Below, piece after piece: positions 59,601 through 62,600 of a stretch of 64,000 nt of DNA (position 1 is its first letter; each line of letters begins with the position of its first letter). Source of the stretch: Styela clava (taxonomy: Eukaryota); NCBI RefSeq assembly GCF_964204865.1, contig NC_135256.1, positions 16,864,001-16,928,000 on the forward strand. Direction: 5' to 3'. Below the pieces are notes generated by a model. It was not told the origin of the DNA and did no database searches. It worked only from the letters and a program-made list of their open reading frames with translations. The position numbers were made by a program, and so were the translations under genes.

Positions 59601-62600
59601 CCAGGCAACTCAATTCAACAATTATAATCCAAAGTAAATACAACTTAACTTATGTGACTAAATACAAGAAACAGCATTTATCATTCTATTTGGACTATAT
59701 TACAACCCTAACCTGTATCCCTACATTATATTACAACTCCAGTATGAACCGTTGATTTTAAACCCAATTAATAACTTCAATTCGAATCGTTTATCCTAAC
59801 CGCGAATAGTAAACCCAATATTAAATACGATAAACAACTCCTAGCGCAATAGATTACACTGTATACAAGGACAGAAGGTGCCAACTCATCGAAGCAGCGT
59901 GGCGATAATTTAGAATTCCCGGGATTAATCGAGAAACAGGACTCTGTCGCAATAATGCTGCGTCGATACGTTTGCAACGTCTGCGTAACAACGTAAAACG
60001 TCATCAAATTAGAAACACGTTATGATTCTCGCTAACAGTCGGTCTATTTCGTGTCCAAAAAAATACAGGGGAGACAAAAACGATATTGAAGATGAATAAG
60101 AATAAGAGCTAAAGAGTGGATAGAGAGAAGGACAGACAGAAATAGAAGAGTGTGATAAATAAGGAAACGAGAATAAAAAAGAGAAGAAATTGTAAAAAAG
60201 AGAGAAAATAGCAAATTGGAAAGTAGAAAAAATAAATAGTACTCACTATTTTCACACAATGTTCCATACGTATTTTCTTCGCAAATGCACTCAAAGTTCA
60301 TGTCTACTGTATTTATACATTCACCTCCATTCTGACACGGATTGGATATGCATGCTGTGAAACAAAAGATTTTATTGAAAATGTTTTTCACATCATAGAA
60401 ATATGGATGAACTCTAGCTTTATATACTCACCGTCGAAGAAATATTCGATGTCAGAATCTGCAAAAATCTTCCTCAAATACGTAGAATCTAGATCCTTAA
60501 ATAAAATAATTTAATATAAAGCTGTAAAGTTTTGAATGTGATGTAGATTTTAGATCAATTTTTTCTGGTTGTGAATGAATGAAAAAATAATCTTTTTAAT
60601 AAAAATCTACATACTCCCGTTTCCCAAATAGATCCTGACCCAGCACCAGAACTTTCCATCTCACCATCACTGAACATAATTAATCCAGCAAGTGTTGATT
60701 GAAACGCAGCATTGTATAGAAGATTTGGTTGATTAAGTTTAATATTCTCCCTTAAAATAAAGATGTCAGAATACAATTTTGGAAATTTCAAAATTGTGTT
60801 ATATCTCTATGATCGTCACTAACCTGTGATCATCGAAAACCCCGAACTGATCTGTACCTCCTACTAATGCTCCTTTGATTTCGTTTGTATTTGGAATCGT
60901 AGAGTCGTGAAAGAAATCCCAACCACAATTTTGAGGCGGGTCCGGGCATGAACTGAAAAAATACAAAAAAGGTTTCAAATAAAATCATAATTTTCAACTA
61001 GATTATATCGATATTTGAATCATTCAATTTTGTTTCACGTGATTTAAAACAAGTAAACTATGTATCTAACATATAATTATTTTCTTTGGAATCGAACTTT
61101 TACATAGAAAATACTAAACATCTAATTGAGTAGCATTCTCTTTGATTGTTATAATTTCCGAATACTGTCATAGGCAACGAATGAATATGTTTCTACATTT
61201 TATTTATATTTTTGCCGTTTTCACTATTGCATTAATTCAGTCTCATCAAAGGCGGTATAAGGGATCATTAGCGATCACACTTATTGTGAATGGTTGATAA
61301 ATGACTAATTTCATAATGTTTTAGTAGAGACATGCATCACATGACATGCATAACGGGGATAATGAGGTCGCAATTACATAGTTGCAAGTGATAATGCTAA
61401 TAAATATTCACTCTTTGTAATCCGATTTACATGGATAATTCAATAAAATTACACCCGATCGCCAGAGCGTAACTTACCTGTCTCTGTGATGTGTGTAGTG
61501 GGGATAATTATTTCCGAATCCAATCATAAAGCTTTGTCCGTTGCCAGTTCCAAGCATTATATGAGTTTGCGCTTTAGCAAAACTCAGATATTTTTCTCCT
61601 GCTGGTGACCCTCTGTATCGTCTTGCTAGAATAGTGCATACGAATGCTGCATTCGCTAGAAATTGTGAAAATAATGCAATGAGCGATTTTAATACGATCA
61701 ATGTTACATTGAATCGCCAAACATATATATTTATATAACGTATATTCTTATTGCGTACAATATAGGCAGTTGTGCTTGTGCTCATTTTGTAATTTGACGA
61801 TGCAACTTAATAGTAAATTTAGTAACGAAATTTATCCATCCTATAAATCATATAAATATTTTTGAAATATTCATGACGGCAATAAATGAGGAAAAATATC
61901 CAACGGTGGGCATATGGAAATATTGTTTTTCTTCATCATCGAGGCCGCCCGAGATTATTCAATGACAAACCGCATATTTATAGTAAAACCGAAAGTTTAT
62001 TGTATTTTATTCATTAATAAAAGATATTCAAATAGAAAAGCCAGAATGTACATACAAGATAAAGCAACCGGTTCATTCTGTAAATTTTTGTAAAGTAATC
62101 CATTCGGCAAAACATAGGCATCAGATCCGCCAGGCTCATCACAAAATTGTTTCACTGGTTGCATGTACGTTCTATAATCGTCTGTTATGTCAGCCATCAG
62201 CAACTGTACAAAAAGCATCAAATACGTTGAACACCGATAATTTATTGCAATCTTATGTATAAATGTAATATTTCATAATGATTTCATTCTAATCTACAAT
62301 CACGTTTATGCTATTGAAACAGAAAATGCGCTGGAGACTATTTACGAAATAAATTTTGATTTAATCTTCGACTTAGATCCACTTAGAATGTTTATACAAT
62401 AAACTACGAAAAAGGGCACAATTGGGTTAATATTTGACTCGAAGCACGTTACTTTATGACATTTTATTGGAATGTAAAGACATGTATATTCCAGCAAAGT
62501 AGAAAAGAGATTTGTTTTAAATAAACTGTTGGCCAAAACCAGACATTCACAATATTGTAACAAAAATACCAACTTGTATTCCAATCATTTTGTTGTCATA

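Follow-up and report, generated by a model that had tools for sequence, protein, structure and literature searches.

A GH9 domain with replaced catalytic carboxylates in an expressed, predicted secreted multidomain protein of the tunicate Styela clava

The window analysed here, a stretch of 64,000 nucleotides of the Styela clava genome (contig NC_135256.1; C8:16864001-16928000), carries on its minus strand a gene with a domain of glycoside hydrolase family 9 (GH9), in which three of the four conserved carboxylates are replaced: the catalytic acid Glu by Gln, the supporting Asp of the DAGD motif by Ile and the Asp preceding the YNA motif by Leu, the latter in the same exon as the Gln. Only the base Asp remains. 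Coordinates refer to the window unless stated otherwise, and the adjoining 10 kb are designated L002. The GH9 domain is distributed over nine exons, seven of which lie in the window (A to G, Table 1) and two farther upstream in L002; the loose end of exon A at 63974 runs into an upstream exon outside the window that ends in EEYYGM. When the Pfam profile PF00759 (cut-off 27.7 bits) was scored exon by exon, with no score for a joined domain, exons A, C and E each exceeded the cut-off on their own, which assigns the domain to the GH9 family, and the two upstream exons scored 34.8 and 76.7 bits. Exons B and F stayed below the threshold, and exons D and G matched no Pfam family. Exon D is the most diverged GH9 exon of the gene; in tblastn, none of the 18 paralogue copies compared matched it at E≤0.01. 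Exon F is identical in 21 of 42 residues to P0015, a full-length canonical homologue of 608 amino acids. Exons F and G are the final two of the domain and share a split Arg codon. A preliminary description of this DNA had stated that the frame is intact and that HHR and the structural motifs are kept; indeed, all GH9 exons are open, and neither a stop codon nor a frameshift is present in the nine GH9 exons, the linker exon or the EGF exon.

The same description had claimed, on the basis of a gap-free alignment, that the catalytic acid is replaced by Gln (codon CAA, minus strand) and the conserved Tyr of DY..NE by Ile. Both substitutions are found in the translation of exon G. As exon G alone matched neither a Pfam family nor, at E≤10, any PDB sequence, its register was set via P0015, a second library protein (P0039) and the paralogues. 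The acid region of P0015 reads ..YTDHRGDYIKNEVACDYNAGFQS, with DHR and YNAGFQS flanking the segment GDYIKNEVACD. In exon G the anchors DHR and YNA.FQS both match, and the distance from DHR to YNA equals that in P0015 (R+12 = Y); no gap is therefore possible, and the Gln falls on E587 of P0015. P0015 in turn aligns with the termite endoglucanase 1ks8_A at an E value of 9.1e-151, whereby E587 pairs with Glu412 and D231/D234 pair with Asp54/Asp57. Hence, the alignment to a termite GH9 structure, which had been proposed as a check, places the Gln on Glu412 of 1KS8. A six-frame motif scan of the whole window found only exon G, which rules out an alternative canonical Region III exon.

The conservation of this site was assessed among library homologues, using a HMMER search of the whole library with the second GH9 exon that yielded 1915 proteins at E≤0.001, of which the best 150 were examined. 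Among 51 homologues of at least 300 amino acids, 32 have a readable acid site, and 31 of these, two of them in the cluster of P0015, contain the Glu, which indicates that the departure to Gln exceeds chance. In the accessible text of PMC6032398 the Glu of Region III is termed the 'fully conserved' acid of GH9. The window gene thus carries Gln where a competent GH9 endoglucanase requires the acid Glu.

The DAGD motif is interrupted by an intron. The first GH9 exon, located in L002 on the minus strand, reads ...SLLFIESQRSGFLSDDNRIPWKKSSGLYDGGLEGVNLIGGYYI, and the second, likewise in L002, reads (A)GDYVKFNFPMAFAITQLAWG... after the intron, so that the motif becomes IAGD (GGYY-I|A-GDYVKF), with Ile in place of the supporting Asp and an unchanged base Asp. 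This reading follows from the sole GT donor and the sole frame-preserving AG acceptor of an intron without an observed RNA joint. A phase-1 GT|AG intron lies at the same place in 17 of 20 paralogous copies; the copies on C3 and at C2:29.038 are intronless at DAGD, and for C8:17.08 the donor was assumed to be equivalent. The first Asp of the DAGD-type motif is kept in 41 of the 43 library homologues in which the motif can be read. According to the accessible text of PMC6032398, the C-terminal Asp of DAGD acts as the base and the N-terminal Asp provides essential support. With IAGD, the window gene therefore departs from a competent GH9 endoglucanase at a second motif.

Moreover, the substrate cleft is altered. 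As previously described, WDNK reads YDNK in exon C, and the upstream WGSLR-type motif is gone. Homologues carry WG.LR[HY]A between the GLLY and NAAF anchors; in the window gene this stretch contains no Trp, Arg, Tyr or His, and thus neither an aromatic nor a basic residue. The more general statement that the cleft aromatics are lost holds in part: WG.LR[HY] is gone and the Trp of WDNK is changed to Tyr; however, HHR is retained, as are the His in DH..W and the Tyr in YNA. Also kept are GY-DELVWG, GALVGG and the complete YNA.FQS motif. Since the acid Glu, the supporting Asp, the Asp before YNA and the cleft stretch are all missing, canonical GH9 hydrolysis is not expected. Judged from these residues, the domain should be unable to act as a canonical inverting GH9 hydrolase, and it has probably lost the ability to cut cellulose. 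Mutating this Glu to Gln leaves GH9 enzymes almost without activity; our literature search returned no paper on mutants of GH9 Glu412 or E424.

Nine sequencing runs contain the stretch 60000-64000 wholly or partly. Four of them, X5-X8, represent four samples of one study and contain 0.20-0.23 of the sampled words of this stretch, compared with a fraction of about 0.30 of the stretch that is exon. Contigs or reads of X5, X6, X10 and X1 were placed on 60000-64000, with X5 and X6 deriving from a separate study and other samples. The X5 and X6 contigs cover exons only: eight introns with CT..AC ends, corresponding to GT..AG on the minus strand, are skipped, and the eight RNA joints coincide exactly with the predicted borders (Table 1). 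The depth over these joints is even, with 48-51 in X5 and 89-99 in X6, and the depth of the exon containing the Gln equals that at the other joints. Together, the exon-only coverage, the skipped introns and the even depth indicate that these contigs represent spliced RNA and that the Gln exon is constitutive.

Verification of the CAA codon in reads had likewise been proposed. No other letter is listed at 60729-60731 in the contigs of X1, X5 and X6. X1 is a DNA-type run, possibly of the source sample, and its contigs span 60120-60788 with 0 other letters; the spliced RNA-type contigs of X5 and X6 span 60655-60749, where the X6 piece has 2 other letters of unlisted position. X10, a Hi-C sample and the only raw-read run, has zero depth at the codon, so that the support for CAA comes from contigs. 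As DNA-type and independent RNA-type contigs agree, a sequencing error at this codon was rejected. Thus, despite the loss of catalytic residues the gene has an open frame, is correctly spliced and is expressed in two runs.

The exons of the window gene are identical to P0015 in 172 of 349 aligned residues. Three fragments from public Logan contigs, P0011, P0151 and P0028, match the second GH9 exon at 77, 77 and 72%, respectively, as compared with at most 57% for any paralogue. They are open and stop at the same exon border, where they run into the intron; each comprises one exon and no catalytic site. Their degree of identity suggests that they are likely orthologues of the window gene. P0039, a Logan transcript contig of 2788 nt encoding 786 amino acids, has a GH9 domain in which VSGD stands for DAGD and Gly for the acid Glu, combined with a thyroglobulin type-1 repeat and an accessory module at the N-terminus. 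It is the only dead GH9 among the 32 readable library homologues. As P0039 is only 44% identical to the window gene (183 of 416 aligned residues), it was rejected as an orthologue.

At the level of single exons, the genome contains 124 matches to PF00759. Both the acid site and the DAGD-type motif could be read in 21 GH9 domain copies including the window gene, which sets the number of copies in the genome to at least 21. The acid site is Glu in 10 copies and another residue in the other 11 (Gln 4, His 2, Lys 2, Ala 2, Ser 1), and on this reading of the sequences the dead domain of the window gene is not unique. The DAGD-type motif is canonical in 9 copies, DGGD in 3 and lacks at least one Asp in 9; both sites are canonical in nine of the 21 copies, and the remaining 12 are degenerate in at least one catalytic motif. 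All three other copies on C8 are dead: their acid residue is Ala in two of them and Ser in the third. The window gene is the only one of the 21 copies with Ile at the first Asp of DAGD, and its identity to the individual paralogues (18 copies compared) lies at 39-52%. This identity, together with the absence of a stop codon, points to an old, separate lineage with an intact frame.

The GH9 copies are found at the loci L034-L050 on C1, C2, C3, C6, C8, C16 and C17. Some are arranged in tandem arrays, with the acid residues Q, Q, Q, E on C16 and H, H, E on C1, and three canonical copies on C6 look identical. One of the loci (L046, C2:29038206-29039939) is GH9-like, intronless at DAGD and part of an open frame of 890 amino acids, with DGGD and Lys as the acid residue; this copy may have arisen by retroposition or may be a dead paralogue with few introns. 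The genome also encodes a GT2 domain (Glyco_trans_2_3, 60.8 bits; C9:16177301-16177801) and a GH6 domain (35.4 bits; C9:16179895-16180164) on the same strand, with GT2 located 2.1 kb upstream, which we take to be the arrangement of the tunicate cellulose synthase.

The GH9 domain is part of a longer protein. Upstream of it, a signal-peptide-like first exon (MDKGIYLIWIILVCLTFLSPVSTA...) starts at L002 3788, and a two-exon accessory module is present, the first half of which resembles N-terminal modules of library GH9 proteins (P0060, 44% over 32 residues). Downstream, the GH9 exons are joined via the linker exon to an exon that matches the six-cysteine EGF profile (cut-off 21.5 bits; Table 1). 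The consensus of the X5 loose end at 60247 pairs with 51594-51616 with 1 mismatch, for which the chance expectation is none; the next exon hence lies beyond an intron of 8.6 kb. This exon encodes the first half of a Trp-containing repeat, and the predicted second half of the repeat (50937-51117), for which no RNA evidence was seen, was assigned by frame and splice sites. A second such repeat is encoded by two predicted exons (49812-49601 and 49494-49386). Both repeats comprise about 106 residues split over two exons, read from 51616 to 49386, and they resemble each other with E values of 1.4e-6 and 2.9e-5 in a database of 7 sequences. Continuity of the frame via the short predicted exons 50823-50764, 50384-50325 and 50252-50184 suggests that repeat 2 belongs to the transcript. 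Farther downstream on the same strand, six EGF or cbEGF exons (44276-41614; EGF_CA up to 51.1 bits) may belong to a separate gene or encode the C-terminus of this protein.

Table 1. Exons and sites of the GH9 gene in the window
Feature	Position	Strand	Evidence
GH9 exon A (...ILFEKV)	63814..63973	-	PF00759 53.1 bits, profile positions 119-169; RNA-contig joint 63521|63814; loose end 63974
GH9 exon B (...EEFY)	63407..63521	-	PF00759 22.1 bits, below cut-off; joints 62733|63407, 63521|63814
GH9 exon C (YDNK for WDNK)	62574..62733	-	PF00759 38.5 bits; joints 62203|62574, 62733|63407
GH9 exon D (LLMAD...), without WG.LR[HY]	62056..62203	-	Joints 61655|62056, 62203|62574; positional alignment to P0039
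GH9 exon E (NAAFVC...), Region II His-x-Arg retained	61478..61655	-	PF00759 39.9 bits; joints 60952|61478, 61655|62056
GH9 exon F (plus AG of the split Arg codon)	60824..60952	-	PF00759 13.4 bits, E 0.048; joints 60750|60824, 60952|61478
GH9 exon G, Region III	60615..60750	-	Ungapped register against P0015 and P0039; joints 60495|60615, 60750|60824
Codon CAA (Gln) at the GH9 acid position (1KS8 Glu412)	60729..60731	-	Alignment register; contigs of X1, X5 and X6
Linker exon, 64 bases	60432..60495	-	RNA-contig joints 60354|60432, 60495|60615
EGF-like exon, phase 1-1	60247..60354	-	PF00008 27.7 bits; joint 60354|60432; loose end before 60247
Next transcript exon, first half of Trp-containing repeat 1	51477..51616	-	X5 loose end at 60247
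Predicted second half of repeat 1 (VWHTCLVPS...)	50937..51117	-	Frame and splice sites; resembles second half of repeat 2
Predicted repeat 2 (two exons)	49386..49812	-	Frame and splice sites

Repetitive sequences are found at three places around these exons. The intron following the EGF exon is occupied by a long terminal repeat (LTR) retroelement (52123-60010), the direct repeats of which (52123-52642 and 59134-59596) are 98-99% identical. It contains a gag-pol-like frame of 1410 amino acids on the plus strand (54771-59003), an integrase-like frame of 459 amino acids on the minus strand (53181-54560) and an internal duplicate (54522-54733 = 58932-59143, 100% identical); the opposed frames and the duplicate give the element a rearranged appearance. 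A repeat of very high copy number (62948-63215), with many variant letters and internal joints, lies in the intron that separates GH9 exon B from exon C. The contig depth summed over this repeat is 5,000-25,000 for the RNA-type runs and reaches 374,000 for the DNA-type run, compared with about 50-90 and 59 nearby, respectively, and it is probably a dispersed short element. Finally, in the segment 45272-45978, short units rich in Cys and His recur in dense, overlapping open frames of either strand, so that the segment looks like a tandem minisatellite in intergenic or intronic sequence.

Taken together, these data are best explained, with a probability of about 0.72, by an old, intact and expressed pseudo-cellulase module within a secreted multidomain protein, where it would serve the matrix or tunic structurally or by recognising glycans. 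The predicted order of the protein is signal peptide, an N-terminal accessory module that other animal GH9 proteins also have, dead GH9 domain, linker, EGF domain and two Trp-containing repeats, and further EGF-type exons may extend it C-terminally. In a tunicate, an animal that makes cellulose, the GH9 module would be extracellular and non-cutting, in parallel to other glycosidase folds that became lectins after loss of the acid. Secretion, lack of activity and cellulose binding are in this respect predictions from the sequence. The term 'maintained pseudo-enzyme', which the preliminary description had used, is supported by IAGD, the Gln and the Leu, by the open, GT..AG-spliced exons in independent RNA contigs, by the identity of 39-52% to the paralogues and by the fragments with 72-77% identity.

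Several observations weigh against this interpretation. As several of its residues are lost, the cleft of the GH9 domain may be unable to hold a glucan chain. The frames around exon G and the first GH9 exon yielded no candidate for an orthologue of the catalytic exons. Furthermore, the six repeat and accessory exons matched no Pfam family at E≤5, a genome-wide search with CBM_2 (PF00553) was empty at E≤0.1, and Atlas look-ups stayed below the level of recognition, with sub-threshold hits only. A CBM2 identity of the flanking repeats is accordingly unsupported by Pfam and Atlas, and given these three negative results 'cellulose-binding' is a lead at the level of pattern. Lastly, the RNA contigs contain 7 exonic differences, of which 3 are synonymous and 4 non-synonymous (G->D, L->S, P->A, D->N). 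These are too few to judge the split of 3:4, and they indicate weak constraint at best. The stronger case for maintenance is the intact, spliced and expressed frame despite the deep divergence from all paralogues.

The lack of aromatic and basic side chains in the WG.LR[HY] stretch, the dissimilarity of exon D to all 18 paralogues at E≤0.01 and a Region III that matches neither Pfam nor PDB sequences would also suit a GH9 fold that is kept purely as a structural or protein-protein scaffold, with carbohydrate contacted via the accessory repeats or not at all, the more so as the adjoining modules are of the EGF type, which is typical of protein-protein matrices. However, the His of DH..W, the GY before DEL, the Tyr in YDNK, HHR and the Tyr of YNA are retained, positions that are said to contact the sugar; the roles of single cleft residues reportedly come from studies on T. 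fusca Cel9A. In addition, the host genome encodes the cellulose-synthase-type GT2 and GH6 domains. We therefore regard a scaffold without any role of the GH9 domain in carbohydrate contact as unlikely.

That the domain is still an enzyme, employing other residues, another substrate or another reaction such as transglycosylation or a phosphorolysis-like reaction, appears very unlikely to us. The base Asp of IAGD and HHR are retained, and a few sea-squirt GH9 isoenzymes have Gly in place of the base, with activities that the accessible text of PMC6032398 describes as undetermined. A Gln, however, cannot protonate the leaving group, the supporting Asp, the loop-ordering Asp and the cleft residues are gone, and no nearby acidic residue reaches the acid site without a gap, as both flanks are anchored. 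Even less credible is a gene that is transcribed but decaying, either a young pseudogene or a relic set of exons, as might be suspected from the polymorphisms with their 4 non-synonymous and 3 synonymous changes, from the LTR retroelement with its nearly identical repeats in the intron after the EGF exon and from the in-frame stop in the first GH9 exon of the dead paralogue C8:20.01. Against decay, nine GH9 exons, the linker exon and the EGF exon are free of stops and frameshifts, and eight introns are spliced at GT..AG with even depth. Moreover, the identity of 39-52% to the paralogues implies long survival of the open frame, and the orthologue-like fragments with 72-77% identity are open as well. 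The balance of these points favours the old, expressed and non-cutting module.

In the literature on GH9 in tunicates or ascidians, on pseudoenzymes and on the tunic of Styela clava that we searched, no dead GH9 domain in tunicate matrix proteins was described; the search did not extend to supplements, among them SI2 of the Oikopleura preprint, which lists its GH9 proteins, or to the CAZy annotation that PMC10986139 refers to. The only related remark was that of PMC6032398 on Gly at the base of a few sea-squirt isoenzymes. As far as its accessible text goes, a 2026 preprint reports an expansion of GH9 in Oikopleura, with some members expressed in the house-making epithelium. The accessible parts of PMC10986139 and PMC10334666 deal with CesA and GH6 only; in the latter, GH6-1, with its Asp retained, is set against the GH6 domain of CesA.

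The window gene shares the fold family and the motifs HHR, DELVWG, GALVGG and YNA.FQS with the animal GH9 endo-beta-1,4-glucanases, such as termite NtEG (1KS8) and earthworm EF-EG2 (3WC3). In contrast to these, it has Gln for Glu412, Ile for Asp54, Leu for the Asp before YNA and no WG.LR[HY], and whereas NtEG and EF-EG2 are free digestive enzymes, the GH9 domain of the window gene is one part of a longer protein that also contains EGF and repeat modules. The statement on the Gly-at-base isoenzymes of sea squirts presumably goes back to Davison and Blaxter 2005. To the extent that they are described in the accessible text, these isoenzymes belong to the same animal group and family and likewise show a loss in a catalytic motif; however, they change the base Asp, whereas in the window gene the base is kept and the losses concern the acid Glu, the supporting Asp and residues of the cleft. 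No description in print of a multidomain context turned up in our search. Within the genome, the other dead GH9 copies also lose the Glu (to Q, H, K, A or S) and/or an Asp of DAGD, but the window gene is at most 52% identical to them and has its own order of accessory module, GH9, EGF and two repeats.

Outside the family, the degenerate GH6 domain of tunicate CesA is comparable to the window gene in that a cellulase fold with a lost active-site carboxylate resides inside a larger protein. The two differ in fold family, in origin and in context: the GH6 domain stems from a bacterial transfer and is fused to a membrane synthase, whereas the GH9 domain is of ancient animal origin and part of a predicted secreted EGF protein. 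The GH18 chi-lectins such as YKL-40 have a glycosidase fold in which the catalytic Glu is replaced, and they are demonstrated non-catalytic binding proteins. They differ from the GH9 domain in fold and ligand, and binding, which is demonstrated for them, is a prediction for the GH9 domain.

To our knowledge, tunicates are the only animals that make cellulose. According to the accessible text of PMC10986139 and PMC10334666, the assembly, shaping and remodelling of tunic cellulose are largely unknown beyond CesA and one GH6 gene, and the authors of PMC10986139 state therein that the search for more epidermis-expressed glycosyl hydrolase genes continues. An expressed, predicted secreted protein with a disabled cellulase domain represents a testable candidate for a cellulose-handling component of the matrix, and with about half of the GH9 domains of the genome disabled, in differing ways, there are further candidates for the handling of cellulose. 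These domains also provide a natural series of acid and base substitutions in one fold (Q, H, K, A, S; I, N, A, H, S, T, G), which is useful for studying the evolution of glycosidases into binding proteins. Should the domain bind nothing, it would be a clean case of a dead enzyme fold retained over a long time as a structural module. A wider idea, which we put forward as tentative and rather doubtful, is that tunicates turned an ancient digestive GH9 enzyme into a family of non-cutting cellulose-recognition modules in secreted EGF/repeat matrix proteins. If this is true, the window gene and the other dead GH9 proteins, with 12 of the 21 copies degenerate, would organise, cross-link or anchor the cellulose microfibrils of the tunic, as an animal counterpart of the wall-organising proteins of plants and of chitinase-like lectins.

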